Assembly (NCBI GenBank): GCA_964035545.1
Contig: OZ037771.1
Coordinates: 7,597,190 to 7,661,189 of the forward strand
Source: Bugula neritina
Lineage: Eukaryota > Animalia > Bryozoa
DNA length: 64,000 nucleotides
Direction: 5' to 3'
The notes below the pieces were generated by a model. The model ran no database searches. It was not told the origin of the DNA and worked only from the letters and a program-made list of their open reading frames with translations. Position 1 is the first letter of the stretch. Every line of letters starts with the position of its first letter. Shown one piece after another: positions 8,720 to 39,800 of this stretch. The position numbers and the translations under genes are program-made.

Positions 8720-8834
8720 AAGGAGGAGAGCCAAGGCTATACAGAGATAGAGAAGAGAGCCAGGGCTATACAGAGATAATAGAGAGGAGAGCCAAGGCTA
8801 TACAGAGATAACAGAAAGGAGAGCCAAGGCTATA
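8720..8834. repeat. Minisatellite, about 32-bp unit GAGAGGAGAGCCAAGGCTATACAGAGATAACA, 4 copies
   Basis: Visible directly; 11 copies at 29220-29555 in unit 2. Confidence 0.9.
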
Positions 8835-11612: not shown

Positions 11613-12928
11613 AGGCCATGCGTAAAAGTTTTGACATGGATCAAATACTTTTTGCAGCTTTGATAAATGGCTAAACAGGATGTTCAATCTCCAAATGTTT
11701 CAAACAATTTAAAGTAATGCCATAGTGTTGCATATGGTATTCTATGTTGTTTTCTAATCTAACTAAATACGTTTAAACAATTTCAAATAGATAAACTACA
11801 TTTGCTCTAAGAAGTTCCTAATATGAAGTAAATTTTCAAGTGTTGTTTACCCATTTAGGTTAATTTTTGCCTCCATACCATTGCACAATCAAGTCAAAGT
11901 AGTGTATTGTGAATAAATATTTACAAAGTTTCAACCTGGGAACAAACGTTGTGCAACATAAAATGTAACTCTATTACAGACTGAGTAAGCAGCAATCACA
12001 TAATATACCTAACAATTCTACTATTTCTCTAAACTCAAACTTCACTTCGTTATGGTAAGTGGTGGAAGACAAAATTCTAGCAGACAGCAGCTATCAAACT
12101 AAGAAGTACTAAAAGAAAAAGGTAATTGGGTTTGCTTTTGCAGCATTACAGGAAACTGGGGAGTGATTTATGGAATGTCATGACATTGGTGATTTCATAC
12201 TTAAAATTGGCTCATGAAAATTACTACTCCATGGCAAGACTTGTAAAATAAACAATTCTGAAGGGCAAATTCGTGCTGCCAGCTTTGTGGAGATTATGCA
12301 GAAAAAAGCAACTTTAGAGAAAGTAGAAAACGTACTTTCTACCATACTTTCCTAGTAAAAGAGAGAAAATTCAATTACTAGAGTGGCCCATGCAAAAGCC
12401 CAAAAGAATATTTTTATAGACAATACAAAGAAAAGTAGCCGAGATAAAACCAAGTGACATGGTCAATTTAGCTAGAACTGACATCAATGCATGGTACAGG
12501 ATGTGTGATAAACCACAAAATCGGCTGTGCTAGTGGAGAATATGTCAGCCTACTGCCTAGCAGTCATTGGTGCTAATAGTTACTCACTCACACTGAAACA
12601 CTGATATGTTATGTGCAGAAACCTTTTCACACACAAAAACATCTCATTCTACAATCTTCTTCATTTTGCTAACCAAATAAAGAGAAAATTTCAAATCCTC
12701 ACATAATTATGTTCAAGTGCAAAATTTGATGGTATAGGGCTATTTAGCACTTTTCTATCCCTAAGCTTATGTTATACAGGTAAAAATTATTTAGAGTTGT
12801 AGCTCAGCCAATAAGTTGCATTTCATATATATATTTAAATTTTTGCAGCATGTAAAATTTCAGAAGTTGGAAACAAAGATGTAAACTGGTAAACAATTTG
12901 GGGGTGTCAAAACTTTTACGCATGACTG
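11613..12928. mobile_element. Decayed Tc1/mariner-type element (counterpart at 32333-35644 has the LINE nested in it)
   Basis: TA-flanked TIRs: ta-(c/a)(a/g)gccat(g/t)cgtaaa(a/t)gttttgaca ... tgtcaaa(a/g)cttttacg(c/a)atg(a/g)ctg-ta in both units. Confidence 0.7.
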
Positions 12929-13061
12929 TATAATATATTGCAAGCTACAATCAGATTTATTCAAAGTTAGTAATCTCTATAGTTTATATAAAATAGATGA
13001 TCATATATGATATCTTACATGTTTACATAATAGTAGACAATATATAACTAATATAACTCAC

Positions 13062-13199
13062 CTGTCTGGTAATGTATGTAAGTCACAGTCCCATAGATGT
13101 AACTCTGTAAGTGACTCCATCTTTGGTATCACCTCAGGTAATGTTCCTAACTTATTACGAGACACCTCTAATGTGTGTAGATGTGTGAGTTGAGAGAGA
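13062..13199 (-). CDS. LRR cassette exon (2 x 23 aa), copy 1, exon 5 of 5
   Basis: SLSQLTHLHTLEVSRNKLGTLPEVIPKMESLTELHLWDCDLHTLPD; 138 nt, phase 2-2. Confidence 0.93.
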
Positions 13200-13438
13200 C
13201 TGTAATATACATACAATATACCATGAATATAATTATACAAGTTACAGAAATATTATGTTAAACATGTGGTAAGCTTTTATTATTTCTGCTTTGCAAGTAT
13301 GAATTGTGTCAGTTATTTGTGTTTAGGAATTCAATTCATAACTGGAGAGTTGGTATGCTGGGATTACTAGTTTCAGTTTTATTATACTATATTATATGTT
13401 TACATAATAGTAGACAATATAAAACTAATATAATTCAC

Positions 13439-13576
13439 CTGTCAGGTAAGGCAAGTAAGTCACAGTCCCCTAGACTTAACTCTGTAAGTGACTCCATCTT
13501 TGGTATCACCTCAGGTAATGTTCCTAACTTATTATAAGACACATCTAATGTGTGTAGATGTGTGAGTTGAGAGAGA
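13439..13576 (-). CDS. LRR cassette exon, copy 1, exon 4 of 5
   Basis: ...LDVSYNKL...LTELSLGDCDLLALPD; 138 nt, phase 2-2. Confidence 0.93.
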
Positions 13577-14372
13577 CTGTAATATACATACAATAAACAA
13601 TGACTATATTTATACAAGTTACAGGACTATTATGTTAAACATACTGTGAGTTTATTCTATACTGTTGCTTTGTAAGTATGGGTTGCCAGTTAATTGTGTT
13701 CAGTAAGGATAGCCAAAAGCGAATAGGCAGTTTCAACATGTGGCAAACATATAGAAAGAGTCCTGGTGGCGCAATGCTGACATCCTGTAGTTTATAATGG
13801 AAAGTAAAAAACATTCAAAAGATGGAAAACCTCCAGGTGTGGTGACGATGAAGAGAAGGGAAAGATCACAGAGAAAGTATACGGAGAGAAGAAAAAACAG
13901 ACGACAAACAAAATTGTAACAGCCAAAAAGAAAGGCATATGGGACAGTCTATGAATACCTACAAGAGATCGAAACAAAGAACCTATACACCTATATACCT
14001 ATAAGAACCTGTATATACCTAGATACAAGTTGGCCAAAACAAGAAAAAGACGATTATTGGATATTAATAGAATGACATTGTGACTATAATTCATCAGAAT
14101 GGTGACAGCATAAATGAGAATGTCGAGACAGATCTTTAGGATAATTTATGAGGAGCACATGGAAAATGATGTGATTAGATAACAGGTTGGGGTGAAATGA
14201 ATGTCTATAAACATGAGGAAAAACGTCTGCAGTGGTATTGCGATGTTTGCAGCAAAGATGGTGATATTAGCTTCAACTCCAATACATAAGAATCAATGGT
14301 ATAATGGATATGAAGAATCTAACAAATTGAAACATACAATATAATCTAACAAGAAATGAGGGTGGTCTAGGC

Positions 14373-16026
14373 CAGTGGCTCCCAACTTTTTTCCTACTAT
14401 TCCCCCATTTAATAAATGTTGACTACCGTATTAATCCCCCCCCCCTTTAGTAAAGCAAAAAAAGTTTCATGACTGACATGATGATAATATAGGATACAAT
14501 ACAATATAGTTTGTTCTATTAAAATATAATTATAATAGTAGTTATATTATCGTTATTATTATGTTATGAATGTATAGAACAAGGAGCAGTTCAATTTATA
14601 ATGATTCTTTTGTGCCAGCTTGCATAAGTCTGCATTGCTGTTTTTGGCCATGCCCATCTTAATTCACTCTGCAGATTAGGGCAGTTTCTCTTCTCTTTGA
14701 ATTAATGAGAATCCTACCTCACTTGGCAAGATGGCGCTGGGTGGCACCAAAATTCTAATTTTTCAGCTATGTGTGGGGAGAGTTTGCTTGTTAAAACCCA
14801 AAATGATTTTAGGTGAAAATGGCACAAATGGAGAAGTAGGTAAGACTGGCACACTGATGGTAAATTTTCCCAAACCCCCACCCCGGCCATCAAAATTGAA
14901 CCCCAAACCAAAACCTCCACCTTGTATTCAAGCCCAAAATCCTCACCTCAAATCCCACCCCCAAACTCCAAACCGCTCACCGCAATATTCAAAATGTGCC
15001 ATTTTTACACACTTTTTAATTTTTGCCATTATTACCTGTGCCTTTTATACCAGACACCACCCACAACACATCAATTAAAGAAGATTTGAAAAGAACCTTC
15101 ATTGCTGAATTGTAAACCAACTCAATGAAATCCTCTTGTAATTCCTCTAGATTTTTTTAACAGAACGTTGCAATAGGTCACATGTCAAGCTAAGAATCTA
15201 GCTCTTTCTTTTTGAGAGGTAGCTCAGAAAAATATTGTTAAAACTCCAATAAAAGTTCAGAGAGATCCGAAGAAGTTTTTTTGAGAAAGAACCTGGAACA
15301 GGTGGTGTTTGGTAAAAGTGGCACAGGTAGCAGTGGCACAGGTAGTAGTGAAACAAATGTAAAATTGGGTAAAAATGGCACATTTTCAATATTAAAGTTG
15401 AAGATTTGGGGTTGGGGGTTCAAGATGGAGGGTTTCGGGTTCAGCATGGGGGTTTGAGAAAATTTAACACCAGTGTGCCAGTTTTACTTAAAATCAAAAC
15501 AGGTTTTTTTCCTAAAATAGTTCATGGAGTGTGGGGAAAGACACCATATCTTTGATAGACGCCACAACTTTAGTGTAACTTTGAAAACATTGATGCTGCA
15601 ATGCAAAGCAATGATAGGATTATTGCACTCCTGTATTTTTAGGTTCAGATTAATTAGTGTAGCAAATATAGTCACTAGGTATGATACTTGTATTATGTAT
15701 GTATGGTAATTTATAGAGATTGGCTTGCTTAAAGTTGGCCTATTGGTTTTTGCAAACTTTTTGACATCCATTCAAAGTAGTTCAGAGAGCAGTCAGGGTA
15801 GAGTAATTAATAAACACATTCATGTTGAAGTGAACTGAGATTGCAGAATATAGTTTGGTTTAATAGATCAACTAGAATGAAGGTTTATAGATATGCATGT
15901 ACATGTAACATGCAAGAGCTCAAAAAAGCCTTCAATAAACTGCGTGAAGTTCTTAAAATCTAAATCCCCCCTGAAAAGCCCAAACTCCCCTCTAGGGGAG
16001 AATTCCTTCCAGGCTGGGAACCACTA
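14373..16026. mobile_element. hAT-type element, same family as 4969-6621, opposite orientation
   Basis: Ends CAGTGGCTCCCA / TGGGAACCACTA; TSD GTCTAGGC/GTCTAGGT; the same insertion is at 36711-38364, so it predates the duplication. Confidence 0.85.
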
Positions 16027-16414
16027 GTCTAGGTGAAAAGGGTGGGAGGTTTGCTTAAGAATAATATCCACTTTATCACTGGAGAATTAGTATGGTGGGA
16101 CTACTATCATCATTTCTGTTTACTCTATTATATATGTACATAGAATTAGAACACAGAGAGAATGTAATATACATACAACCTTGGTGATTAGAGTTTAGAC
16201 CAGAGTAAATATGGGAAGAATGTGCTTTTTAAGAGATTAGATGATTCAGTGTAACAAATTGCTAAATCAAAAACAGTTGTAACAATTTTCTATTTGAGAA
16301 TAATATTCACTTTATTACTAGATAGTTGGTATGCTGAAACTATGAGTATCAGTTCTGTTACACTTTATTATATGTTTACATAATAGTAGACTATATATAA
16401 CTAATATATCTCAC

Positions 16415-16552
16415 CTGTCTGGTAATGTATGTAAGTCACAGGCCTCTAGATATAACTTTGTAAGTGACTCCATCTTTGGTATCACCTCAGGTAATGTTCC
16501 TAACTTATTATGAGACACATCTAATGTGTGTAGATGTGTGAGTTGAGAGAGA
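16415..16552 (-). CDS. LRR cassette exon, copy 1, exon 3 of 5
   Basis: ...LDVSHNKL...LTKLYLEACDLHTLPD; 138 nt. Confidence 0.93.
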
Positions 16553-16798
16553 CTGTAATATACATACAATAAACCATGACTATAATTATACAAGTTACAG
16601 GTATATTATATGGTAGATATGCAGTGAATCTAAACTATTATTGCCTTGTTAGTATGAACTGGGTAAGTTATTTGCATTTAAGAATTATATCCATATTATC
16701 ACTGGATAGATGGTATGCTGAGATTACTAGTATCAGTTTTATTATACTTCATTATATGTTTACATAATAGTAGAACATATATAACTAATATACCTCAC

Positions 16799-16936
16799 CT
16801 GTCTGGTAATGTATGTAAGTCACATTCCCGTAGATGTAACTCTGTAAGTGACTCCATCTTTGGTATCACCTCAGGTAATGTTCCTAACTTATTATGAGAC
16901 ACATCTAATGTGTGTAGATGTGCGAGTTGGGAAAGA
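16799..16936 (-). CDS. LRR cassette exon, copy 1, exon 2 of 5
   Basis: ...LDVSHNKL...LTELHLRECDLHTLPD; 138 nt. Confidence 0.93.
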
Positions 16937-17179
16937 CTGTAATATACATACAATATACCATGACTATAATTATACAAGTTACAGGAATATTATGTCAAAC
17001 ATTTTGTGAGGTTATATAAGGTGAAGAACAAAAACAAGGAATGAGAAAAACACAGCTAACTGCCTGAGACTTGGAACTTTAATAACCCTCCTAGTTGTTC
17101 CAAACTTCAAGCTTCCTGGCCACTGCCAATGGGCCATGCAATTTCCAGGTGATGTAATGCTGTGCAATGGATAGGCAAA

Positions 17180-17900
17180 TAGAGTGATAGGTTAGAAGAA
17201 CAGAGAAAAGAAAATTAAAAGATGGTGGACTAAACCTGAGCAGAACCAAGACCGAGTACATGCTACCAGTGAGAATAGATAACAAGGAGAAGAAAAAATA
17301 CTATAACTGAGATAACTACAGTGATCTGTCTGAGACTAGTGCTTTCAAATGTCTTGCAACTATAATAAATCAGAATGGTGGGTTGTAGCCTTGAAGTAGC
17401 TAGGAGGATTGGAGTGGCTTGAGACAAGTGGAAGGATCTCTCAGAAGTGCTGTGTGATAAGAAGGTATCGATTAAACATACAGTACTTCTGTTTAGAATA
17501 TCCATTCAGTATGGTAATGAAACCTGGTCAGTTACTCATGGGATGGAAGACGGGATGAAGACAGTAGAAATGATACACAATTTTGGGATGACCTACGAGG
17601 AGCACATTGAACATGTGATTAGATAACAGACTGAGGTGAAACGAATATCTACGGACATATGAAGACAACTGCAACAGTATCGACATCTTTGCAAGAAAGA
17701 AGAAGATGATATTAACCTCAATTAGAATGTATAAAAATCAATGGTATATGGAGATATTAAGAATCTGACAAATGGGAACATACTATAAAATATATCAAGA
17801 AGTACTGGAGCCTTAAGCAAGAAGAAGTCCACAGCCGAGTGTGATTGAGCTGGGAGATTGCAGAATGGCTACCTTGCAGGACTATAGTCAGTTAGGTGAG
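17180..17900 (+). mobile_element. Decayed RTE-like LINE fragment in an LRR intron
   Basis: Remnant peptides GLNLSRTKTEYM, WKDLSEVLCDKKV, YGNETW; related degraded sequence at about 14050-14360. Confidence 0.55.
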
Positions 17901-17976
17901 AAAGGCGAAAAGTTGTGTTTAATATTATACTAATCTCTACAGTTTAAGTAAAAGCAGTGAACATGTTATGACTCAC

Positions 17977-18114
17977 CTGTCTGGTAATGTATGTAAGTCA
18001 CAGAACCGTAGATGTAACTCTGTAAGTGACTCCATCTTTGGTATCACCTCATGTAATGTTCCTAACCTACTTAGAGACACATCTAATGTGTGTAGATGTG
18101 TGAGTTGGGAGAGA
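17977..18114 (-). CDS. LRR cassette exon, copy 1, exon 1 of 5
   Basis: ...LDVSLSRLGTLHEV...LTELHLRFCDLHTLPD; 138 nt. Confidence 0.92.
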
Positions 18115-21100
18115 CTGTAATATACATACAATAAACCATGACTATAATTATACAAGTTACAAGAATATTATATTAAACATACTGTGAGTTTTTATTATTT
18201 CTGCTCTGCAAGTATGAATTGTGTCAGTTATTTGTGTTTAAGAATTCAATTTATAACTAGAAAGTTGGTATGCTGGGACTACTAGTATCAGTTTTATTCT
18301 ACTCTATTATATTTTTACATAGAATTAGAACACAGAGAGAATACATACAAAATAAGCAATTAGACCAAAGCATATATGAGAAGAAAGTGCTTCCTAAAAG
18401 ATAAGATGATTTGTTTGTAACAAATTGCTAAATCAAAAGCAGTTGCAATAATTTTCCTGTAAAGATAATATTTAAGATGGGTTTTACTCTGTATGACTCA
18501 GTTTTGCTGCCAAGGCAGCCACCTGAGAATTGCTGATTACAGAAGGAGAGTAAATAACTGGAGATAAAAAAAGTAGATAAATCTCTGTATTTTCAACTCA
18601 CTTAAACTTGACTGTGGTGCAAGTAAATTGTGATGCAGTATAAAACTGGTCATATGTGTGATAGTAGCTGTAAGGCAGGCAATAACAGGTAGGCCTAAAT
18701 AATGAAAAGTCCAACAACTACTTTGAGATAATAAGAATAAAGTATTCACAACCCTGGACTAAGTATAAAGTGATTATAAAAGCTGGAGATACAATTGAGA
18801 TAATGCTGATAGGTAGGAAGGGAGATCTTATTTCAGAGTGACTCTAGATTATGACTCATCTGTATATATAAACTATAGCTGTGTTCTGAACATATTAAAT
18901 ATAGTTGATTGTTTTACTCCATATTTCACTACATCTAAAAATATAGAAATTCTTCCCATGATTTTAGCAACTCAAACAACTTCTAAAGCACGGATAATAC
19001 ACTAGAAGGAACGAAGACAAAACTAATAGCAGTGAATACTTTGAAGAATATGAAACAAACTTAAGGCTACCAGCTCTGCAAGTAATATTATATTTGATTT
19101 GTGATTTCCTTAATGAATATTTAGCTATCCATTTCTCTACTGGCAGAATAAATATTAAAAGTTATCCCCACATGCAGGTAATCAGCTATAATGTGTGAGT
19201 CACCAGAAGTCATTGTTGACCTCTTCCCCAGCAGCCTCAGCTCAAACTAATATAATTCTATTCAAGTACAATAATGGAAAAAATTCTATACTTTTCAAAT
19301 TCGATTATTTATTGGGGGTTTGGTTGAACATAATTTAGTTTGCACTTTTTCTCATCAAGCACACAGACTTTTCCAAAATTCCTCTCTTACTGCACCCACT
19401 TTTACAATTCAAGGAAAACAGAATGACTACTCAGGTGCAGTAGAGATATGAAGGAATATTGCTGACATGCCATACAAGTATAACTCACCAAACACTTCAG
19501 CATTTCGGTAAATAGTCAATGAGTTACAACTGAAATACTGACAGCTAAATACACAACTCAAGTATATATAATTATCCAAAGAGAAGTCATGCTCTAGAGG
19601 ATAGAGATATTGTGACCTTAAACATGTTGATAACAAAGTGATGATAGACTTACTATTCTAAACTGTTGATACTGGTTAGGTGTTGAATACACAAGGTAGT
19701 TACAAGTGGAGCAAACTCTGTAACAGCAGGTGGGAGATCTCCCTCTATGCTTAGGTCAGTGATCACATGACCTGAACAGAGCTTCTTTATTTCCTCCTTT
19801 GTATAGAGTTTTGCAGATTGGTGGAACAACTCTTCTTTGTTAATAGGATCCATACCAGAGTGCCTCCAGCAACACCTGTATTTCTCTGCTAATAACAAAT
19901 GATCTAGTTTTTAGTATATACGTACCCAATTATAGAGTAAATATAATATCACCTGGTTTATAGTACATTTATCTATGTTAAAATTCTAGTAGTATAAAAT
20001 ACATCATTTTACTGTTGAATTACTTATATAATAATTAAAAATATAATCCAGCAGTAAATATATTCCTATATTCAAAGAGACAAACATACTAATAGTTGAG
20101 TCATCAACATGAAGATTGATAGGAATAAAACTGAGAATTTCTTCAACTTTTTATATCAGGTAGACTGAAAACAAATGAGAAACTTATCTGATAGACAATG
20201 CTGATGTTTCTATTTAAGATTTCACATACAACATGTTGATAAGAAAGTACTAGCAAGTATAAGAAATGGCAAGAATTAGAAATAAACCTGTTTTTAATGT
20301 CATCCAAAAATTTATCAACAGCTTCATTAAGCTACATGCAGATAAAAGTCACAGAAAATGTACAGAAACACCAAAGTATAAATATAGTTCAGAGAAGAAA
20401 CTTAAAGGGGGATAACAAAGTCTTTATTTTTAACTTTCAAGCTGGAAGATTCAATTGAAACCTATTCAGGTATATTTAAAGAATACTGTATTCAGGTGTG
20501 TATTTTACCATTCTCCAGACTAACTAATATTGTATACGGACCTGTTTGTGAAGTTGCTGCTGTTACATCATCCTCAGAACTGGTTACAGAGTTGGTAGCC
20601 ATGTTGTTTCTAGTATCAGATACTACAATGTAATACTAATGTATGTAATATGAATAGAGTATGAGATAGTATACAATGTATGTATATTGAGTGAAAAGGT
20701 GTGTGGAGGAAGTGGAATAATAAACAGTAGAGAGATAGCCAAGTAAAACACAGGTAAGGTGAACCAAGGAACATATTCATTTATAGCATTTTCATTTATT
20801 TATAATTTTCAATATAAATTGCATTAGCATTTTCAGCCATTGATAATTTATAGCATTTGATAATTTGTGACATACAGTTTTAATCAACAAGTTTGACAGT
20901 AGGTTGGCTTATATGTTTGAGACAAGATTATTGAATATTGCATAAGAGTTGGTTTAGGACAAGAGGAAATATCTAGTTTGACAACTTAGTATATTTCATT
21001 TCATTGTTTAACAGGTACTAACTACTAGAACAAAGATTGATTTATTAATGATAATGGAAACTGTGAGGACAAGCATCAATAGTATTCTAATAGTAATTTC

Positions 21101-22248
21101 CTATGCTCATCTTTTACTTATGTTCACCAGAATTACCAACTTGTAGACTATTTCATTGTGTTTCATGTTTATTAACTATACAATCATCTAACTGTTGTGG
21201 AGGTATAGACTTGTCATTAGCATGAAAAATATTTTAATGTTTCTAAGACCTCTGTATTTTGGGCATAAATACTGCAGTAATTACTCATGATCTGATAATA
21301 AGTCTACTCTAGTTTGAACATAGACTTTCACTTTAGGAATAAACTATTTTGTCTTTTTGTAAACTACTTCTTGGATATTCATTATTGAATAAAAGTTTGT
21401 TATTGGTAACACTGGTGAACAATTCTAAACAGAATATAGTGGTTATTATCTTATGTGTTGAGAATTTCTGTTACTGTCTCTGCTACAGCAGATGTCATAC
21501 AAATAAACAAATTATGACCTCACAGTCACACCCATAGCTCTGTGAGCCAACCACTATAAATTATTGTTTTTATTACCAGTAATCATAATACGAATCTTTG
21601 TGACAACTATAGCTCTGCTAAACAGATACCAAAAACTAGAAACACATATTTTATTATTGGATCAGATCTCAATCCATATTTCAAACTTTACTATATAATT
21701 CAAGTATAACATATTAAATGCTACAACTCTTCCTTGACAAGTGTTGGAGGTGTGTTTTGGCCAGGCCAAGTAAATCCTAACAATAAACCGATCCCAAGGC
21801 AAATTTAAAAGCTACATAGTAACATCATTATGTGAGCTGAATAAATAATTTAAAACCACCCTACGCTGTTGGAATGCCTATACTTTAAAATTAAGCCATA
21901 TCAACTTCAAGCCTACCCGCTGACCTTGGTGATAGTGTTAACGGTCAGCACACCCATAACTAACGTCATTATTGTAATATTCATAGCGAATATAATTGAA
22001 AACGAGTCATACTCATAGTGAATGTCAAACTAGATGACACTTCGATCATCAATCAATCATCAAATTTAATGTCAATCGAAATAAATCAATAATATAATTA
22101 TTAATTATAACTATCAACATCAATACGAATATTTTCATATTCTTCTTCATATTCAATATTCCTATTAACTATTAGCTTATTTATATTTATACTCATATTG
22201 ATATTCACTATCATATTCATATTCGATTTGACATTGCATCTCAGACTC

Positions 22249-22490
22249 AAAGTGAAACTGAAACAGTGAAAGTCTTCGAGATGAAATTACAATGCATGAC
22301 ACTTACATGTGGTGCAACTTGACAAACTCTGTTAGTTCTTCAGTTTTGTACTAAAATTTTGGTTTGAATTGTGGTTAGTATAGCGGTGAGACAGCTGAAT
22401 TAGTTTCGTCATCCAGAATGCGAGCTTATCTTCTTTTTGCTTCGTTTCAAGGACTGCCGGAAAACGCCTACTACTGCAACCGGAAACACG
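22249..22490 (-). promoter_or_regulatory. Putative promoter / 5' UTR exon of gene copy 1
   Basis: ISRE-like 22249-22273; GTAAGT donor 22301-22306 (minus); CCGGAA at 22457 and 22480; about 1.7 kb upstream of the ATG at 20602. Confidence 0.45.
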
Positions 22491-24894: not shown

Positions 24895-27800
24895 CTACCA
24901 CTCTCCATAGAATAAAGGAAACAAGTAAATCTTCCTTCTACCAGTGAGAGTTTTTGTAATCACAGGAGTCTGTGTTACAGTACCTTCTGAGTCGGATCTG
25001 TTACCTGATATTTTCCTCACTCTTTCTTGTACCTTTAAATATTTCATATTCAGGTAAACATTGGTCAGTATTACTGACACTACAGCAAGAGTTAGAATGT
25101 ATTGCATCTGTAAATTCATCTACTAGTAAAAACTGTATTTGTGAATAGCAAAATTATATATACAAATAGTAAATTTATATAAAATTCAATTATATTGATA
25201 TTGAATAAAGTGGAGACTACATAACTAACACCATAATATACTGTGATGGTATTACTATACGACAGTATCTCATGACTATAACATAGTATGATTATAGTAT
25301 ATTGTAAAATATTTGTGAAGGAAAAATTCCATTTGCGTGAGAATGACTATATTATACTATGGCTATATATTACTATGACTATACTATACTATGACTATAT
25401 TATACTATGACTATATCATACTATGACTATATTATACTATGACTACACTTTACTATGACTATATTATACTATGACTATATTATACTATGACTATATTATG
25501 ACTATATTATACTATGACTATACTATGACTATATTATACTATGACTATACTATGACTATATTATACTATGACTATATTATACTATGACTATACTATACTA
25601 TGACTATATTATACTATGGCTATACTATGACTATATTATGCTATGACTACACTTTACTATGACTATACTATACTATGACTATATATTACTATGACTATAT
25701 TATACTACGACTATACTATACTATGACTATATTATACTATGACTATACTATACTATGACTATACTATACTATGACTATACTATACTATGACTATATTATA
25801 CTATGGCTATACTATGACTATATTACACTATGACTATACTATACTATGACTATACTATACTATGACTATATTACACTATGGCTATACCATGACTATACTA
25901 TACTATACTATGACTATATTATACTATGACTATATTACACCATGACTATACTATACTATGACTATATTATACTATGACTATACTATACTATGACTATATT
26001 ATACTATGACTATATTATACTATGACTATATTATACTATGACTAAACTATACTATGACTATATTATACTATGACTATACTATACTATGACTACATTATAC
26101 TATGACTATATTATACTATACTATGACTATATTATACTATGATTATACTATACTATGACTATATGACACTATGAAAAAACTCACGCAATTTTATAGTCGC
26201 TATCCCTGTGAGAAAACCCCTGATGGAAGGGGTTTTTGTTACAGCGGGCTAAGGACTTATTTAAATGAGGCACAGAAGCAATTATGACTATACTATACTA
26301 TTACATGACTATACTATACTATGACTATACTATACTATGACTATATTATACTACGACTATACTATACTATGACTATATTATACTATACTATGACTATATT
26401 ATACTATGACTATATTATACTATGACTATACTATGACTATATTATACTATGACTATATTATCCTATGACTATATTATACTATGACTATACTATGACTAGC
26501 CACTACAACTATACTATTATGACTACACCACACCAACTAATACGAAAACAGCCTCTTCTAAATAGGAAATGATGTCACAGGAAGTTACTCACAATATCAA
26601 ATAAGTCAGCAAGATCACGATGACAGCCATGTCTGTGTAAAGTCCTGACAAGTGTTCTTATCAATAATGACCCACCATCATGGAATCTCATGGAAGCACT
26701 GTCTGTTAAAATAATACAATGAGTTAAATAGTAAATATTATACAATGTATAGTAACAGTAAGTGACACTTTGCAGTAAAAACTAGTGAGAAATGCAAATT
26801 GAAAATTTGAAAACTGCGTTATTTCAGCAACGAAAGGTATATCTTGAGAAAGTCACATGGCTGGTGGGTTTCACAACTACTGGATGGTGATTGGGAGTTG
26901 TGGCCTATGATTTAGGTGAATAGGGATTAACCACACAGAATTTTTTGTAACTTAATCATCTCATTTTAAATAAAAAAACATTCAGCTAGAGAAAATACTT
27001 AGCCGAGTATTTTTAGGCAGCAGAGTATAAACTGTACAGACTAGTGTATCACAGATTAAATGAAAACTAGATAACTGTAACTCGCACACAAATAGTCTAT
27101 GTACTCAGTTCAGGTTTATGAAAGGTCATGTGATTAGACAGCACAGCACAGCTGCTAATTGCAATATTATTCTATTTGTTACTAATTTTCAATTGAATAA
27201 TGGATTTGCGGTTTGAAAATTTTGGAAGATAATACCCTGAGCAAATTTTCTTAATAAAATTATCCCATTCCTAAGAATGATGCCAGAAATACTGGCTTCT
27301 ATCAGTGGACTAAATTCTCACTTTCAAAGCAGGAGTGAAGGATTAGAAGGTCGTCAACATCAAAGTTCCTCTGTCCAGTTGAAGTCTCAGCTTCCTGTTG
27401 ATGAGTTCTGAGAGCAGAAAGTTCTGGTGAGGAGGAGTTGGTACTCTGTTGAATATTCTGTTCAGTTTGACTGACTGAGTTACCTGATTGATTAGTAACA
27501 CATGTGATATACCAACCAGTATTCTATGTATATGTATGAAGACTAGAGTATCATATAATACAGTATTACAATAGTATAATATATTCTTACTCGTATCATA
27601 TCTACACTCACCAACTCTGCACGCCTGAATAACCACAACTTTAGGCTTGCCGGCCATGTTCGGAAAATTTGTAGAGTTAATGAGACTGTAGATCTGTGTT
27701 AGAGAGACTGGCTGTGAGTCAACTCCATGAATCATTCCATTAGCTCCGTGTGCAAACAGAAACAGGAAGAACATACCATAAGTGTTATGAATCTCATCTC

Positions 27801-30800
27801 TTGTCTCTGATTGAATACACTGGAGTATCTCCTGTATATGAATATAACACAACACACACAGTATACAAACTCAGTGTGAGAGAGTCTATTCTATGAACAG
27901 GACTGACCAGCTCTAATAAACATACACTTCTATACAGTACAGAGAGAATACAAGTAAAGACAACTCCTGAGACTACATCCATATATTCAGTGTGAGTGTT
28001 GGGAGAAGAGAGAATTATTTCCTTCAGTAATTGCAGCTCAGACACAGAATGAAGCAAACATACAAACATAGGGGGAGGGGGGGGGGAGTGCGACCCAACC
28101 ATCTGTCAACATCATCTTGCAGAACAAATGCAATCAAAATATAGAGACAAGCAAGCATGTTTTTCCCCGTCTCATACTAGCCTTTAGAAAGTTAGCTCTG
28201 TGAAGCAAACGTTAGCCCAAAAGCTAAGAGTTTGCATTTCCCTAACTTAATAACTGATTCAATAGACAAGTCTACAGGCTATTATAACAGTGAAGTGAGA
28301 CATTAACCACTAATAACTAGTCACACTACGTGATAAGAAGAGGGAGACAACTACAAGTAAATAGAAATATACCTCAGCTGTGAGATCCTTCTGCTTCACA
28401 ACCTCAAATCCCATCTTCCTGAACAGAGCAAATGTGTTGTCAACATCATAACTAGAGCCAAGTCTCTCTCCTCCATTTCTATACTTGTTGTTGTTTATAA
28501 TCAGAGCTCTTCCTCTGAATGGACTCGTCATCTTGTATATCTGTAGATACAGACTATGTGATTAGTTTAGTACTTACTGGGTACATTCTATATGGAGAAT
28601 ACAATACTGAATAGAACACAATTGACCTGTTCATATTATATTATAAGCAACTGAAGAGTAAAAAATCATCCATGAGTAGACTAATATGGTTTCGGGCATA
28701 TTGTGTGGCTTCTGCTAACCAGAACAGTACTAGGAAAATTGAAAGTATAACCTAGCAGTTTGTTTCATAGAATAGTAACCCATCATTCACACTTAACGCA
28801 CAGTAGGCTGTAACAACAAATATCAGCCATTTTTACAAATGTCTGAACTTCCTGTATGGCGTTGCGGTACGTAATCAATCACAAACAAGCACTGCTTAAT
28901 TCAAAAATGTTGGGCGCACTTCTATTGGACAGAAAAATTTTTGCGTCAACGCATTGCATATAATTGTCCAATGAGGTGTCATAAACCATACTTAATAGCA
29001 GATTTTGAAAACTTCAGCCCGAACACATCAAAAATGGCTGATATTGTACGCTATGGGTGACGGTACAGTAAGCGTGAATGAGGGGTAAATCAATCACAAG
29101 ACTGTTGAAGGAAGGTTATTTCAAAATCACAGTAAAGTTGTTAATATATAGTGCTAGAAATAAGGTGACATATTTTTGCAATTAAGACAGCTGGTAAGTA
29201 GTTGACCAGATGAGAGTGGAAAGAAGAGCCAAGGCTATACAGAGACAATAGAGAGGAGAGCCAAGGCTATACAGAGACGGAGAGGAGAACCAAGGCTATA
29301 CAGAGATAACAAAGAGGAGAGCCAAGGCTATACAGAGGTAAAGAGGAGAGCCAAGGTTATACAGAGATAACAGAGAAGAGAGCCAAGGCTATACAGAGAT
29401 AATAGAGAGGAGAGCCAAGGCTATACAGAGATAACAGAGAGGAGAGCCAAGGCTATACAGAGATAACAAAGAGAAGAGCCAAGGCTATACAGAGATAACA
29501 GAGAGGAGAGCCAAGGCTATACAGAGATAACAGAGAAGAGAACCAAGGCTATAGAGTATTCAACATGACATACAAACCTTTGAAGTGTTGATGAAGAGAG
29601 ACTTGATACTCTGATTAGTAGTAGGAACTAGTGTCAACTTGGTAAGATCTTCTGAAGTGGAGGTATTACTTTCTTCTTCATCCGAAACATCACTCAGTAC
29701 ATCATCAGTACCAACAGTATGAGTAGCAGCTCCACTGTGTCCAATATTATCTACATGTACAGGAAACATCACATAAACAGCTCACAGAAATGTAATGAAA
29801 CCAACAACCTGCAGGAACAACTTCAACTGTCAATAACAAACATGGAGAATCAGAAAGGAAGAAAGTTATTCCTAATCAATTCACTAGGAGTAAGTTTAAT
29901 TCAAGATACCTGGTGGCTTGTAGTTGGTCTTCACAAAATCACTCAGTTTCTGCAGCTCATCTCCAGAAAGCTGGAAAGCTGCAATAGAAGTATGAATTAT
30001 GGAGGTTGCTATTACTTGAACAGTACATCACCATCTGAATATGCTATAAATAACCTAAGAGAAGATAATCATACTAACTCGGGTGTAAGAAACAAGCTGG
30101 GACATCTCTGTATGTTCCACATCTACCAGGTGATAAATCTGAAATCATGGGAAGGGATTCACCATCTTTTGGAGGTCGACACCAGGGTGGGTTAATGAAC
30201 CTCTTTGGACGCTTTTCTCCAACCAATGGGCAGTGAGCACACAAGTTGACACAGGTGATTTTACTTGCTCTCCATGTGGAGTTGACGTACTTTACGGTTG
30301 AATGAACTGAAGTGGTCAACATCTTCCAAGCATTGCCTATCTGTCGACAAGCAGACGTTACAGAGATAGTGAGTTTACGAGATTTGTGGTCATGCAGCAA
30401 CTGCAGGGTGTAAGCTTCGTCTCTCAGCTCCACTCCATTCTTTCTTACAGCTTTTTCACCACAAGCCGGGAGATCATTGAGAAGTTTCACAGAAATCTGG
30501 TGGTAAACGTACTGAGGGGGAGTCAAGCCACCAAACACCATGTCTACAGACAGCTTTACAGGTTGCCTCCTGGAGGCAGTCAAGTCGGTGAAATACTCCT
30601 GTGAGAAGTATGGCATAGTGTAACTTAGTCTCCGGGATGAATCCTTCATCTCGAATAACAACTGGAAAGATTGCAGCAATGCGACTGCCACCTTCATCTT
30701 GTCACTCGTAGAGAAGCTGGTCTCTGCTATCAGAAGATGCTGAAACAGCTGCTCACTCATCCTGCCAGTTCGAACAAACTCTTGAGCCAAATTATTAAAC

Positions 30801-33800
30801 TCCGTTTCATTTTCTATCAACGGATTGTCAAGTGAATCCTCTTCAATCGCTGACCGTCGATTGCTCCACACTTCCATCTCGTGAGTGAAGAACACGTGGA
30901 GCAGCTTTGTGACCACAGAGATGTCGTAGAATACCAGAGACTGCAAATTCTCCCTATCCTGGTACCAAATGAGATGGCCGCTGTTATGCATGTACGAGAG
31001 AATCACTCTCAGCTGGTCTTCACTTGCCAACTCGCATTCAATGACATGTTGAAGCACTTCTGGAAATGTCTTGTAACTTCCATGGAATGAGTTGAATGTT
31101 TGAGCAACTTTTCTCCACAGAGTAGGCACCTTCTTCACGACTAGTTTACTGTCAGCTATGATATGACTTCTCAGCTGATCAAACACCTCTTCATATTCAT
31201 CACCCACAACATATATATCTTGTTTTTGAAACATCTCTTGGCACTGAAAAAGAGAAACTTGTGCAAAAGAGCTGGAATAATTCTCTTTAGAATTTTCTTC
31301 TAGTTGTATCAAATTGAATACACTTTTGGTGTGGAAAAAGAACAGCCTTTCTAGCTCTTCAAATCCATCTGCACTGTAAGCATCTCGGTGAGTGAAAACC
31401 AGTTTGGGTGCTCTGAGTCTAGGATTCGCCAGGTACAGATGTGAGAGCCAATCAAAATATGTGCATCGAACTGCTTCATTACCATTCACCTCTAAACAAA
31501 GCTCTTCAAACTCCTTTAGATTCACAACCACAATAGGAATACAGTTCTGTTTCAATGTGAACTGGTAGGTAGATTGGTAGATTTCATTACCACCAAAATC
31601 TATGAACTGAAGAACATTGCCACCAACCACTAACTTTTCCATATTGAAGACACGAGTTGTTTCATCTTCCACTGCATCAGCCGCTCTATTGGTTAGTTCC
31701 CGTTTGCCATCTGATCTCACCAGCGTTTTTGCTAGGCTGGTTTTGCCAGACAGCGATCTACCCACTAGAGCGACTGTAGCTTCAGAAACTTCTACATGAC
31801 CACCAGACTTAAGATCTTTATAATACTTTCTGATAGCCGGTAGTCCGTCTATACACACAGCATAAGCTGGAAATGTGAGTGATTCACAGTCGTTGCATTT
31901 CAGTTCAGTCAGATTAGGCATGTTGAGAAGTTGAGGAGTTAAAGATGTCATCCGATAGTTGAATGACACGTTCAGGTGTTGGAGATTCTTGAGTTGACCA
32001 ACACTACCAAGTAAGTATACAGTATAACTTTATTATTATTCTATATCAAATGTATTATGCTTAAAAGTAAAACTTGATTAAATACATAATAGTTAGTATC
32101 TAACATAGCCTGGGAGAAAAATAGTGTTTGACAGCAAAACTGTGGCAAATGACTAGAACACAGGCCAAACTGTAAAGATAGACTATAATGATTATTTGAC
32201 TTAACAGTACAACCATTACAGTGGAAAATTGAATATTGATCCAAAATTTGCAGATTTTATTAAATTTCAAAACTTTGGATCTACTATAATACAATTGCAA
32301 TATATGGAAATTGTATTATTGCAAAATTATTACAGCCATTCGTAAATGTTTTGACACCTGCATATGCTTTTTGCAGCTTTGATAAATGGCAAAACAGAAT
32401 TTTCAATCTCCTAATAATTCAAATGATTTAAAGTTTTGTTTTGTTTTGTTTTCTTTATTTCCATCAAAAAAAAACAAAAGGACAAAAAAATACAAATATA
32501 CAACAGTAACACAAAAAGAGCTAAATTCAATTTATATATAATATCAATCGAAGTCAAGATGGGGGCCCATGTGCTCAGTAGCATAGCTATTCAAGGAGCG
32601 GGGCCCAAGTGGCAGTTGAAAAAATAGTGGGAACTATTAATTCAGATTAAGTTAAAGATTTTAGTAGGTGCTTTTTCAACAATATTTTAAATGTGGCAGA
32701 GCTTTGATGATGTCTTAAAGTCAGAGGTAGCTTATTCCAATTGCTAGACATCTGGTAGGACACTTGACGATGACCTGCTGCGGAGGTAGAGAGAGGTAAG
32801 GGTAAGGAAAGTTCAGAATGTCTGGTGAGGTAAGTTGGTGGTTGTTTGGTGTGAGATGGAGTATAATAAGCTGAATGACCAAGAAGACATAGGCGGTAGA
32901 TATACAAGAGATCAATAGGAAGAATTTCTGCTTTGATAAATAGAGGTGACGTGTGTTCAGTAGGTGATTTGTGGAAAATAATGCGAATAATGCGTTTTTG
33001 AATTAAAAGCAACTTGTTCAGATGGGTTTTAGGGGCATTTCCCCAGGCTTCTAAGCAATATGTAAGTTTGCTGTTTATCAGACTGTTATATAATAAAATC
33101 AAAGCTTTGTATGGTAAAAACTTTGAAGCTAAGTATATCATACCAGCTACTTTGTTGAGCTGAGCCCTTAAATAATTTATATGAGCACACCAGTTTAAGT
33201 TAATGTCAATGACTACACCTAAAAATTTTATTTCTGAGCTAGGTGAGAGAGGTATATTGTCAATATGGATGGTACTGTTAAATACAAAATTCTTTTGGTA
33301 GTTTTTAACAATGATATAGTTTGTTTTCGTTAAGTTTAGAGTTAGTTTGTTTGCAATGCACCAGTTATTAACTTTATTTAGTGAGGAGTTTATATTTCCA
33401 AAATCAGCATTTAAATCTTTGCTCTTCCAAAAAAGATTCGTGTCGTCGGCAAACAGAATAGTATCAAATAAAGGACAATGGGTAGCTAAATCATTTATGT
33501 ACAGCAGAAAGAGCACAGGGCACAAGATAGAGCCCTGGGGAACTCCACAGGTGATATGCAAGGAATTGGATATACTGTTCTCTATTATAACATGCTGTGT
33601 TCGATTGGTCAAGTAGTTTTGGATTAAACTTATGGAGTGAGAATCAAAATTGTAATCTCGTAGTTTCTGTAGCAAAATATTGTGGTTGATTGTATCGAAT
33701 GCTTTTGAGAAATCAATGAAAATACCCAATATTACTAATGAGTCATTAAGTGCTTTGAAGGATTGGTCTGAAAACTTAAACAGTGCGTCTTGTGCACCCT

Positions 33801-36800
33801 TCTTCTGTTGGAAGCCAAATTGAGAAACCGACAAAATTTTGTGTAGGTTTAAATGTTCATTTAATTGGTTGCAGATTATTTTTTCAAGTATTTTAGAGTA
33901 AACTGGAAGTATTGAGATAGGCCGATAATTACTACATAAAAGTTTGTCACCTTTATTTTTGTAAAATGGCAAAATCTTGGCTACTTTCAGTTCATTAGGA
34001 ATGACACCTGATTTAATTATCAAGTTTATAATGTGTGAGAGGCTGACAAAGGTAAGTTGCACTTTGTTTAACTAGCCTCGCTGGGATCAAGTCTAAGCCT
34101 TCTGATTTAATTTCATTCAAATTTTTTATTTCAGTTAAAACTCTGTTTTTGTCTACCAGCTGAAAATAAAATGAAGGACAATCTTTGGCATTGACTGGGA
34201 TCTCAGGAACACTTGGTATTTTATCGGCTAAGTTCTTTCCAATGTTAGTGAAATAATTGTTTATATAGTTTGCTATTTCTGTATGGTGGATAATGATTTC
34301 TGAGTCAGCTTTTAGCTTTACTGGGAAGCTTGGAGAGGTTGATTTTCTTCCACAAGCATTGTTGATTGTAATCCTAAACTGTTGCATATGGTCTTGTATG
34401 TTGTCTACTAATCTAACTAAATATGTTTAAATAATAACTGAATACATTAAAATGGATAAACTATATTTGCTCCAAGGAGCTGTTGAGCTGAAGTAAATTT
34501 TCAAGTGGTTTTTACCTATTTAGATTAATTTTTGCCTCCAAACCATTGTACGTTCAAGGCAAAGTACTGTATTGTGAATGAATGTTTACAAAGTTTCAAC
34601 CTGGGAACAAACATTGTGCAACCCAGAATGAAACTGTATTACAGACTGAGTAAGCAGCAATGACATAATATACCTCGCAATTCCACTATTTCTCTAAACT
34701 CGAACTTCACTTCTTTATGGTGAGTGGTGGAAGACAAAATTTTAGTAGACAGCAGCTATCAAACTAAGAAGTACTAAAAGAAAGAAGTAATTGGGTTTGG
34801 TTTTGCAGCATTACAGGAAACTGGGGAGTGATTTATGGAATGTCATGACATTGGTGATTTCATACTTAAAATTGGCTCATGAACATTGGCAAGACTTGGT
34901 AAAATAAAAGTTTTTGATGGGTAAATTCAAGCTGCCAGCTGCGTGGAGATTATGCAAAAAAAATAACTTTAGAGAAAGTAGAAAAAAGGTACTTTCTACC
35001 ATACTTTCCTTGTAAAAGAGAGAAAGTTCAATGTTTCAGTGGCCCATGCAAAAGTTAAAACATATTTATAGACAATACAAAGAAGAGTGGTCACCTTTGG
35101 TCACCTTTCACCGCCGTGGTCCTGCTGGTGGCGGGTAATACAAAGAAGAGTAGCTGAGAAAAAACCAACTGACATGGTCAATTTAGCTAGAACTGTCATC
35201 AATGCAGGTACAGGATGTGAGATAAACCACAAAATCAGCTGTGCTAGTGGAGAATATGTCAGCCTACTGCCTAGCAGTCATTGGTGCTAATAGTTACTCA
35301 CTCACACTGAAACACTGATATGTTATGTGCAAGAATCTTTTCACACACAAAAACATCTCATTGTACAATCTTCTTCATTTTGCTAACCAACTAAAGAGAA
35401 AATTTCAAATCCTACGTAAATATGTTTCAGTGCAAAAATTGATGGCAAAAAGCTTTTCAGCATTTTTCTATTGATAAGCTTATGCTATACAACAAATAAC
35501 AATGATCTAGAGTTGTAGCTCAGCCAATAAGTTGCGTTTCATATATATATTTAAATATTTTAAGCATGTAAAAATTCAAAAATTGCAAACAAAGAAGTAA
35601 ACTGGTAAACAATTTGGGGGTGTCAAAGCTTTTACGAATGGCTGTATATTATATTGCAAGCTACAATCAGATTTATTCAAACTTAGTAATATTTATAGTT
35701 TATATAAAATAGATGATCATATATGATATCTTATATGTTTACATAATGGTAGAACATATATAACTAATATAACTCACCTGTCAGGTAATGTATGTAAGTC
35801 ACACTTCATTAGATATAACTCTGTAAGTGACTCCATCTTTGGTATCACCTCAGGTAATGTTCCTAACTCATTAAGAGACACAACTAATGTGTGTAGATGT
35901 GTGAGTTGAGAGAGACTGTAATATACATACAATAAACCATGACTATAATTACACAAGTTACAGGAATATTATGTTAAACATACTGTGAGTTTATTCTGAA
36001 CTGTTGCTTTGCAAGTATGGATTGCCAGTTAACTGTGTGCAGTAAGGATAGCCAAAATAGAATGGGCAGTTTCAACATGTGGCAAATATATAGAAAGAGT
36101 CCTGGTGTCCCAATGCTGACATCCTGTAGTTTGTAATGGAAAGTAAAAAGTATTCAAAAGACGGAAAACCTCTAGGTGTGGTGACGATGAGGAGAAGGGA
36201 AAGATCACAGAAAAAGTATACGGAGAGAAGAAAAAACAGACGACAAATAAAATTGTAACAGCCAAAGATAAGGCATATGGGACAGTCTATGAATACCTAC
36301 AAGAGATCGAAGCAAAGAACCTATACACCTATATACCCATAAGAACCTGTATATACCTAGATACAAGTTGGCCAAAACAAGAAAAAGACGATTATTGGAT
36401 ATTAATAGAATGAAATTGTGACTATAATCCATCAGAATGGTGACAGCATAAATGAGAATGTTGAGACACATCTTTAGGGTAATTTATGAGGAGCATATGG
36501 ACAATGATGTGATTAGATAACAGGTTGGGGTGAAATGAATGTCTATAAACATGAGGAAAAACATCTGCAGTGGTATTGTGATGTTTGCAGCAAAGATGGT
36601 GATATTAGCTTCAACTCCAATGCATAAGAATCAATGGTATAATGGATATGAAGAATCTGACAAATGGAAACATACAATATAATCCAACAAGAAATGAGGG
36701 TGGTCTAGGCCAGTGGCTCTCAACCTTTTTCCTACTATTCCCCCATTTAATAAATGTTGACTACCGTATTAATCCCTCCCCCCTTTCATAAAGCAAAAAA

Positions 36801-39800
36801 AGTTTCATGACTGACATGATGATAATATAGGATACAATACAATATAGTTTGTTCTATTAAAATATAATTATAATAGTAGTTATATTATCGTTATTATTAT
36901 GTTATGCATGTATAGAACAAGGAGCAGTTCAATTTATAATGATTCTTTTGTGCCAGCTTGCATAAGTCTGCATTGCTGTTTTTGGCCATGCCCATCTTAA
37001 TTCACTCTGCAGATTAGGGCTTTTTCTCTTCTCTTTGAACTAATGAGAATCCTACCTCACTTGGAAAGATGGCGCTGGGTGGCACCAAAATTCTACTTTG
37101 TCAGCTATGTGTGAGGAGAGTTTGCTTGTTAAAACCCAAAATGGTTTTAGGTGAAAATGGCACAAATGGAGAAGTAGGTAAGACTGGCACACTGATGGTA
37201 AATTTTCCCAAACCCCAACTCCGGCCATCAAAATTGAACCCCAAACCAAAACCTCCAACTTGTATTCAAGCCCAAAACCCTCACCTCAACTCCCACCCCC
37301 AAACTGCAAACCGCTCACCTCAATATTGAAAATGTGCCATTTTTACACACCTTTTAATTTTTGCCATTATTACCTGTGCCTTTTATACCAGACACCACCC
37401 ACAATACATCAATTCAAGAAGAATTCAAATCAACCTTCATTGCTGAATTGTAAACCAACTCAATGAAATCCTCTTGTAATTCTTCTGGATTCTTTTAACA
37501 GAACTTTGCAATAGATCACATGTCAAGCTAAGAATCTAGCTTTTTCTTTTTGAGAGTTAGCTCAGAAAAATACCGTTAAAACTCCAATAAAAGTTCAGGA
37601 AGATCCGCAGAAGTTTTTTGGAGAAAGAACCTGGAACAGGTGGTGTTCGGTAAAAATGGCACAGGTAGTAGTGGCACAGGTAGTAGTGAAACAAATGGAA
37701 AATTGGGTAAAAATGGTACATTTTCAATATTAAAGTTAAAGATTTGGGGTTGGGGGTTCAAGATGGAGGGTTTCGGGTTCAGCATGGGGGGTTTGAGAAA
37801 ATTTAACACTAGTGGGCCAGTTTTACTTAAAATCAAAACAGGTTCTTTTCCTAAAATAGTTCATGGAGTTGGGGAAAGACACCATATTTTTGATAGACGC
37901 CACAACTTTAGTGTAACTTTGAAAACATTGATGCTGCAATGCAGAACAATGATAAGATTATTGCACTGCTGTATTTTTAGGTTCAGATTATTTAGTGTAG
38001 CAAATATATTCACTAGGTATGACACTTGTATTATGTATGTATGGTAATTTATAGAGATTGGCTTGCTTAAAATTGACCTATTGGTTTTTGCAAACTTTTT
38101 GACATCGATTCAAAGTAGTTCAGAGAGCAGTCAGGGTAGAGTAATTAATAAACACTTTCATGTTGAAGTAAACTGAGCTTACAGAATATAGTTTGGTTAA
38201 ATAGATTAACTAAGATGAAGGTTTATAGATATGCATGTACATGTAACATGCAAGAGCTCAAAAAAGCCTTCAATAAACTGCGTGAATTTCTTAAAATCTA
38301 AATCCCCCCTAAAAAACCCAAACTCCCCTCTAGGGGAGAATTCCCTCCAGGCTGGGAACCACTGGTTTAGGCGAAAAGGGTGGGAGGTTTGTTTAAGAAT
38401 AATATCCACTTTATCACTGGAGAGTTGGTATGCTGGGACTACTATTATCATTTCTGTTATACTCTATCATATATGTACATAGAATTAGAACACAGAGAGA
38501 ATGTAATATACATACAACCTTGGTGATTAGAGTTTAGACCAAAGTAAATATGGGAAGAAAGTCCTTTTTAAGAGATTAGATGATTCAGTGTAACAAATTG
38601 CTAAATCAATGCTAAAACAATGTTCCAATTGAGAATAATATTCACTTTATTACTAGATAGTTGGTATGCTGGGACTACTAGTATCACTTCTGTTATACTT
38701 TATAATATGTTTACATAATAGTAGAACATATATAACTAATATATCTCACCTGTCTGGTAATGTATGTAAGTCACAGTGCTCTAGATGTAACTCTGTAAGT
38801 GACTCCATCTTTGGTATCACCTCAGGTAATGTTCCTAACTTATTCTCAGAAACATCTAATGTGTGTAGATGTGTGAGTTGGGAGAGACTGTAATATACAT
38901 ACAATATACCATGACTATATTTATACAAGTTACAGGAATATTATATGGTAGATATGCAGTGAATATAATTTATTATTGCCTTGTTAGTATGAATTGGGTA
39001 AGTTATTTGCATTTAAGAATTATATATACTTATTACTAGAAAGTTGGTATGCTGAGACTACTAGTATCAGTTTTATTCTACTCTTTTATATATTTACATA
39101 GAATTAGAACACGGAGAGAATGTAGTATACGTACAAAATTACCAATTAGACCAAAGTCAGTATGGGAAGAAAGTGTTTTTTAAGAGATTAGGTAATTTGG
39201 TGTAACAAATTGCTAAATCAAAAGCAGTTGCAATAATTTTCCTGTAAAGAGAATATTGAAGATGGGTTTTACTCTGTATGACCAGGTTTTGCTGCCAAGG
39301 CAGCCACCTGAGAATTACTGATTACAGAAGGAGAAAAAACCGGAGACAAAACAAGAGAGAATAAATCTTTGTAATTTCAATTCACTTAAACTTGACTCTG
39401 GTGCAAGTAAATTGTGATGCAGTATAAAACTGGCTATAGGTGTGATAGTAGCTGTAGGGCAGGCAATAAAAGGTAGGCCTGAGTAATGAAAAGTCCAACA
39501 ATTACTTTGAGATAATAAGAATAAAGTATTCACAGCCCTGGACTAAGTATAAAGTGATTATAAAAGCTGGAGATACAATTGAGATAATGCTGATAGGTAG
39601 GAAGGGAGATCTTATGTCAGAGTGATTCTAGATTATTACTCATCTGTATAAGTAGTAGGAGGTGGATGGTCCTGGCTCACTCTTCTTCCACCGTCGAGTC
39701 TTCGACTCGCCAGTGTCAGAAGAGTGAGCCAGGACGCATCCACCTCCTACTACTCTATTAGTAATATTATAAAAAGTAGTGTAATATTATAAATTTTATT

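Follow-up and report, generated by a model that had tools for sequence, protein, structure and literature searches.

Cassette exons of LRR-Roc-COR-caspase genes in Bugula neritina vary at the predicted ligand-binding face

Seven short exons encoding leucine-rich repeats (LRR) in the genome of the bryozoan Bugula neritina raise the question of whether the residues at which they differ lie on the surface by which LRR proteins bind ligands, and whether selection has diversified these residues. The exons lie in the window, i.e. the whole 64,000-nucleotide (nt) stretch analysed here (positions 7,597,190-7,661,189 of contig C7 in the 216-Mb genome), which contains two complete genes and the terminal part of another, all on the minus strand and within a six-gene tandem array. 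An earlier reading made from the letters of the window (the sequence-only reading) had described the exons as hypervariable only at the predicted ligand-binding face and had proposed diversifying selection for recognition of pathogens or non-self. We find that the observation is real and that, within the limits of sequence evidence, the interpretation is supported.

All seven exons, hereafter cassettes, are 138 nt long, have AG/GT borders and phase 2-2, and each encodes two 23-residue LRRs. That all seven belong to one gene was rejected, since gene models split them five and two. The cassettes are as follows, with a slash between the variable residues of the first and the second repeat.

13062-13199, minus strand: gene 1, LRR cassette exon 5; variable residues E,R / H,W,D
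13439-13576, minus strand: gene 1, LRR cassette exon 4; variable residues D,Y / S,G,D
16415-16552, minus strand: gene 1, LRR cassette exon 3; variable residues D,H / Y,E,A
16799-16936, minus strand: gene 1, LRR cassette exon 2; variable residues D,H / H,R,E
17977-18114, minus strand: gene 1, LRR cassette exon 1; D,L / H,R,F, with Ser in place of the motif Asn
35778-35915, minus strand: gene 2, LRR cassette exon 2; variable residues V,L / Y,M,K
38750-38887, minus strand: gene 2, LRR cassette exon 1; variable residues D,E / H,E,H

A 30-nt core occurs in exactly seven copies in the window (at 13107, 13484, 16460, 16844, 18022, 35823 and 38795), with zero copies expected by chance and none in shuffled sequence. 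The core starts with gtaagt; its interpretation as a splice donor was rejected, as this is the plus-strand reading of minus-strand coding sequence. On either side of a cassette, approximately 60 nt of intron are conserved too, and many successive cassettes are spaced by 366-393 nt. Thus, the seven 138-nt exons with an identical core were found as described, and the motifs of repeat 1 and repeat 2 read exactly as listed in the sequence-only reading. Its claim that variability occurs only at the ligand-binding face holds in the main: among the seven cassettes there are at least 23 amino-acid changes at the x positions of the motif LxxLxLxxN/C versus five in the framework. The word "only" is slightly too strong given these five framework changes, and some of the x positions, such as T9 and S13, are nearly invariant.

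In line with the genome-wide collection that the sequence-only reading had suggested, we identified 40 such cassettes in nine genes. Every one of the 40 lies on the coding strand of its own gene, has AG/GT borders and an open frame; the core is identical in 30 of them, and the five-residue combination is different in 38. Codons 11, 14, 34, 36 and 37 encode 6, 9, 7, 10 and 13 different amino acids, respectively. Each cassette inserts two 23-residue repeats in frame, and paralogues differ in cassette number (2-6). Cassette numbers across the six-gene array are 4, 6, 6, 2, 5 and 4, while three further genes at C7 5.04-5.11 Mb, known through cassette loci and match coordinates alone, have 5, 3 and 5. 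A transposon-borne repeat or an assembly artefact was rejected because the cassette copies differ, are restricted to the interval from the N-cap exon to the Roc exon, and take part in splicing.

For tests of selection, ten x codons were picked from the LRR motif beforehand and the remaining 35 codons were treated as framework. Among the 40 cassettes, nonsynonymous diversity (piN) was 0.303 and synonymous diversity (piS) 0.068 at x codons; the corresponding values at framework codons were 0.015 and 0.073. For the seven window exons, piN was 0.284 and piS 0.078 at x codons. Site models, fitted with in-house code of the GY94 type (relative branch lengths fixed, sites assigned by naive empirical Bayes), gave a twofold log-likelihood difference (2dL) of 248 for M1a versus M2a, with an M2a omega of approximately 21 on 11% of sites, of 264 for M7 versus M8 and of 246 for M8a versus M8. 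The positively selected codons were 11, 14, 34, 36 and 37.

Recombination among cassettes is evident, i.e. four gametes were found at 108 of 171 site pairs, including two synonymous markers. As recombination inflates site-model tests, three controls were made. In 24 runs of neutral simulations with recombination, 2dL reached at most 36.8 and a site at most four amino acids. In a tree-free minimum mutation count, the nonsynonymous/synonymous ratio was 3.0 at x codons (p 2.7e-6) and 0.3 in the framework; for the seven window exons it was 3.75 (p 5e-4). In positionally equivalent cassettes of four genes, 72 of 180 bases differ in the five codons and 52 of 1476 in the other exon bases; the shared 2.8-kb intron of these four genes diverges by 4.2-5.4%, so that the five codons diverge approximately eight times as much as adjacent intron. 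Moreover, there is hardly any change in the leucine codons that separate the variable codons, and third positions are fixed (at site 34, all eight codons end in T), which makes local hypermutation unlikely. On the simulations, the x and framework piS values, the codon pattern and the intron divergence, a recombination artefact or local hypermutation was rejected. Thus, dN/dS is far above 1 by four approaches, and the proposal of diversifying selection survives the control for recombination. Among six paralogues, piN/piS was above 1 in the N-cap (1.3) and in the large-exon LRRs (1.7) and below 1 in Roc (0.28), COR (0.38) and the caspase (0.42). In the two LRRs of the large exon, variation falls on the motif positions that vary in the cassettes, confirming in a paralogue comparison what had been read from the window. 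In total, we conclude that five surface codons are under strong diversifying selection, while the framework is homogenised and under purifying selection.

We infer that near-identical cassettes undergo unequal crossing-over and short gene conversion, which alter repeat number and reshuffle the variable residues; the units thought to recombine are of approximately 380 nt, exon plus intron. Between cassettes of the neighbouring gene, part of the N-cap exon's 3' end occurs a second time (C7:7592938-7593009), which is a trace of unequal recombination. Mantel tests, which had low power and used noisy ungapped flanks, detected no linkage between cassette halves or flanks.

The cassette matches 23-residue LRR structures of SHOC2 and of Leptospira. 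A relative from the bryozoan Watersipora has equivalent 141-nt phase 2-2 cassettes with the same borders and 42% identity over a cassette, and its predicted structure is a regular solenoid (predicted local distance difference test score, pLDDT, 96) with strands on x3-L4-x5. On this fold, sites 11 and 34 are x5 and lie on the strand, and the turn that directly follows the strand holds sites 14, 36 and 37 at x7 or x8; the variable sites are thus x5/x8 in repeat 1 and x5/x7/x8 in repeat 2 of LxxLxLxxN/C. By the established geometry of LRRs, side chains at these positions would face the concave surface. In a confident model of an orthologous solenoid, the variable residues thus fall on the strand or directly after it and would be neither buried nor convex, in agreement with the ligand-binding face named in the sequence-only reading. 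The selected sites of brown-algal ROCO proteins lie on the same face (PMC3341825, PMC11378527).

In the gene models, a start exon is followed by the N-cap exon, a variable number of cassettes, a large LRR-Roc-COR exon, two linker exons and five caspase exons. Gene 1 has five cassettes. Gene 2 has two, and its whole model encodes 1177 amino acids with no internal stop. Four genes of the six-gene array are open and two have one internal stop each. The parts of the genes other than cassettes are as follows.

3429-8099, minus strand: gene 1, five caspase exons (7932-8099, 7178-7397, 6888-7049, 4522-4631, 3429-3566), with His in FAHG and Cys in QACRV
8859-9259, minus strand: gene 1, two linker exons from COR to caspase (9191-9259, 8859-9031), with GT-AG joints in RNA contigs
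9360-11281, minus strand: gene 1, large exon encoding two LRRs, C-cap, Roc GTPase and COR, with an in-frame TAA in the Roc domain at 10986-10984
19654-20602, minus strand: gene 1, predicted first exon (20542-20602, ATG) and N-cap exon (19654-19885), from open frame and splice sites; the N-cap exon is predicted to encode more variable LRR-like strands
24895-29978, minus strand: gene 2, linker and caspase exons of the gene model
30079-32003, minus strand: gene 2, large LRR-Roc-COR exon with open frame, from domain and fold matches
55446-56392, minus strand: gene 2, predicted first exon (56332-56392) and N-cap exon (55446-55677) of the gene model
60651-63472, minus strand: caspase exons of the next paralogue, which has six cassettes, lies mostly outside the window and has one stop in its large exon

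The closest database protein, Bugula neritina EB796_002463 (87% identity), is one model with Roc, COR and caspase domains. Roc scores 30 bits in Pfam (cut-off 27) and is directly followed by COR, as in ROCO proteins (COR-A E 3e-7; COR-B weak). The best fold match is the Chlorobium Roco protein 6HLU (E 1.5e-17), with further matches to 3DPU and LRRK1/2, and the G-boxes GRSLSGKTS, DFGG and THRD, read from an alignment, are intact in all six paralogues. At the C-terminal end, Pfam identifies a Peptidase_C14 domain that, by homology, is a caspase domain: p20, p10, the His-Cys dyad and the S1 arginines are present, the segments FAHG, QACR and ERLGS can be aligned to CED-3 (for P0006, a near-identical protein, E is 8e-21), and the best matches are CED-3 and caspase-3. 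The p10 exon matches caspase-4 weakly, and two paralogues carry Lys in place of Arg. The substrate-binding loop in the p10 exon (4522-4631 and its paralogues) exists in two forms, MRFHDG/MRFHDS in four paralogues and MKFDYG in two, which may differ in substrate preference. The last caspase exon has two length forms among six paralogues, which assort independently of the loop form. In gene models read by eye, no signal peptide or membrane helix was apparent, and the LRR-Roc-COR-caspase proteins of the window look cytoplasmic.

In RNA contigs from three runs with spliced contigs, the Roc-COR exon, the linkers and the first caspase exon are connected by GT-AG joints; the run covering introns lacked these joints. 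Splicing from cassette to cassette was detected in RNA contigs of two runs as a 138-nt step back. Two unusual joints were each found in one contig of run X10: in one (window 8096-9360), the Roc-COR exon is joined straight to the first caspase exon, skipping 242 nt and leaving the frame; in the other (window 11164-13059), a cassette is joined in frame approximately 114 nt inside the large exon. Possibly, both are minor isoforms of paralogues.

Altogether, these observations make it probable that the cassettes are the variable recognition modules of one-chain intracellular sensors that combine LRR, a Roc GTPase, a COR dimerisation domain and a caspase. The concave face would bind a changing foreign ligand, i.e. 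a molecule of a pathogen, parasite or symbiont. Ligand binding would shift the nucleotide state of Roc and the monomer-dimer balance of COR, two caspase domains would be drawn together as in initiator caspases, and Asp-directed cleavage would then trigger cell death or defence signalling. In this way, the family might take on the job that NLR inflammasomes have in other animals, and binding of pathogens or non-self is a candidate recognition role of the variable surface. Several points weigh against this mechanism. The direction of the Roc switch is unsettled even among known ROCO proteins. The caspase pentapeptide, QACxG by definition, reads QACRVG in all six paralogues, one residue longer than the usual QACRG, so that caspase activity is not assured. 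Two of the six genes of the cluster have an internal stop. The RNA contigs were placed at 88% likeness with paralogues pooled and therefore show the structure of the family rather than which paralogue is expressed, and a plain cassette-to-large-exon joint is not among the RNA contig matches listed. Finally, the folded solenoid is that of the Watersipora relative.

It is unlikely that the LRR face is instead the target of pathogen inhibitors or the guard of a host protein, diversifying to escape or to keep autoinhibition matched. Selection alone cannot separate sensing from escape, Roc and COR vary among paralogues too (approximately 90% identity), and the substrate loop of the caspase comes in two forms; however, the variation is concentrated on one contiguous face across all repeats, N-cap and large exon included, piN/piS of Roc, COR and caspase is only 0.28-0.42, and the cassettes do not co-vary with their own gene.

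We regard it as quite unlikely that the proteins are allorecognition sensors, in which the variable face would read polymorphic molecules of other colonies in fusion or rejection and kill mixed cells as the NLR-like het proteins of fungi do. Animal allorecognition loci are usually few and encode surface proteins. By contrast, the bryozoan proteins look cytoplasmic, and the diversity observed here is that of paralogues in one haploid assembly, at many loci on at least seven contigs. This explanation is nevertheless consistent with bryozoans being colonial and showing allo-incompatibility (PMC8195603), and repeat shuffling, few selected surface residues and a death effector match fungal allorecognition receptors (PMC13449251).

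That selection is absent, and that relaxed surface constraint with gene conversion or local hypermutation mimics it, is highly improbable and nearly excluded: recombination does inflate site models (2dL up to 37) and synonymous alleles are somewhat commoner at x codons (7 in 5.9 sites) than in the framework (16 in 25.8), but the observed 2dL and the up to 13 amino acids per site far exceed the neutral simulations, x codons have the pairwise piS of framework codons, and the intervening leucine codons and third positions stay fixed next to codons that outpace the adjacent intron.

The sensors that we favour belong to a large family. Two genome searches, paired by eye and giving lower bounds, identified at least 91 Roc-COR exons, which are spread over at least seven contigs; for 90 of these exons, a caspase exon lies on the same strand at most 16 kb downstream. 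Similar two-repeat exons occur in long runs on contig C6 and elsewhere. Searches of the genome gave one weak match to NACHT and none to NB-ARC, with uncertain sensitivity to intron-split domains. LRR-Roc-COR-caspase models are present in Watersipora, where the RefSeq name of the relatives is 'MFHAS1 homolog', and at least one is present in amphioxus (Branchiostoma floridae BRAFLDRAFT_67388). Other animal LRR-Roc-COR proteins (P0084, P0110, P0095) end in an OTU protease (amphioxus), a CARD or a caspase (amphioxus); thus, the C-terminal effector slot is interchangeable, as in bacteria. A literature search that covered few subscription papers found no description of the bryozoan LRR-Roc-COR-caspase expansion.

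By its domains, the family would be classed as ROCO and not as NLR, VLR or the algal exon type. The likeness to the LRR-ROCO genes of the brown alga Ectocarpus (PMC3341825, PMC11378527), to which the sequence-only reading had pointed, holds in principle: both have LRR-Roc-COR, modular symmetric LRR exons, variable repeat number, exon recombination and positively selected concave-face sites at similar spacing (four sites, +2, +2, +1). The details differ. The algal exons encode one 72-nt repeat each, while the bryozoan cassettes hold two repeats in 138 nt; inverted or inactivated intronic LRR exons occur in the alga and are absent among the 40 cassettes; and algal ROCOs have no caspase, a few having a trypsin-like peptidase, whereas the bryozoan proteins have a C-terminal caspase, a domain not named in the sequence-only reading. 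Alternative splicing of LRR exons is reported in brown algae, while the short bryozoan RNA contigs cannot distinguish cassettes. The AP-GTPase (Roc)-COR conflict systems of prokaryotes (Kaur et al. 2021, PMC8195603) likewise begin with rapidly evolving LRRs, continue with Roc and COR and have their effector, which may be a caspase, at the C-terminus; they are, however, bacterial, predicted only, present in up to 11 copies and varied in effector, whereas the bryozoan family has an animal caspase, intron-rich genes, approximately 90 copies and a single effector type. In the annelid Owenia fusiformis, ROC is a caspase pro-domain, as here (PMC11463336, whose main text does not mention bryozoans), but the Owenia and amphioxus fusions are noted as single genes without described family expansion, cassette exons or selection. 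MFHAS1/MASL1-type LRR-Roc-COR proteins have the same domain order as far as COR, a likeness by domain order and name. MFHAS1 lacks a caspase and is a single gene in vertebrates. Lamprey VLRs and plant and animal NLRs are alike in the variable x positions of LxxLxLxxN on the concave face, and NLRs follow the same logic of sensor, switch and death effector. In the bryozoan proteins, however, the central domain is Roc-COR, a GTPase in place of the NACHT or NB-ARC STAND ATPase, and the effector is C-terminal; moreover, VLRs are assembled somatically from an incomplete germline gene, while four of the six bryozoan genes have complete open frames in the assembly.

The introns of the window contain several repeated elements. 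A Polinton/Maverick element of approximately 15 kb (39651-54633) lies inside intron 2 of gene 2, with AGTAGTAG ends, a 6-bp target duplication (TGTATA), Pfam matches to a double jelly-roll capsid, an integrase and a C5 protease, and likely DNA polymerase and ATPase frames. The intron directly before the Roc exon of gene 2 carries a non-LTR reverse transcriptase frame (RVT_1, 32647-34387) on the gene-sense strand. A 1.6-kb repeated element with ends resembling terminal inverted repeats (14370-16020, 36710-38360 and, inverted, 4980-6620) is probably a non-autonomous DNA transposon and marks an intron common to four paralogues. A 16-nt tandem repeat in the last caspase intron (3877-4401, 25343-26525, 61039-61484) and a 32-nt repeat in the second linker intron differ in length between paralogues.

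With this family, diversification of ROCO-protein LRRs by cassette exons is seen independently of the earlier case in brown algae, and the complete 40-cassette set of the subfamily and the recombination-robust selection tests are new here. It provides a simple ROCO protein whose predicted output, caspase cleavage, is built in and can be assayed, so that the way in which LRR binding and the nucleotide state of Roc drive a ROCO effector becomes directly testable. Bryozoan immunity is almost unstudied molecularly, and the family is a candidate repertoire of receptors in which each cassette has five defined specificity residues. More tentatively, with rather less confidence than in the mechanism itself, we suggest that cheilostomes may have largely replaced NLRs by approximately 100 one-chain LRR-Roc-COR-caspase receptors, the specificity of which would be regenerated by cassette recombination and selection, possibly with combinatorial splicing or somatic conversion within the colony; each would be a GTPase-gated, self-contained inflammasome in a modular repertoire.

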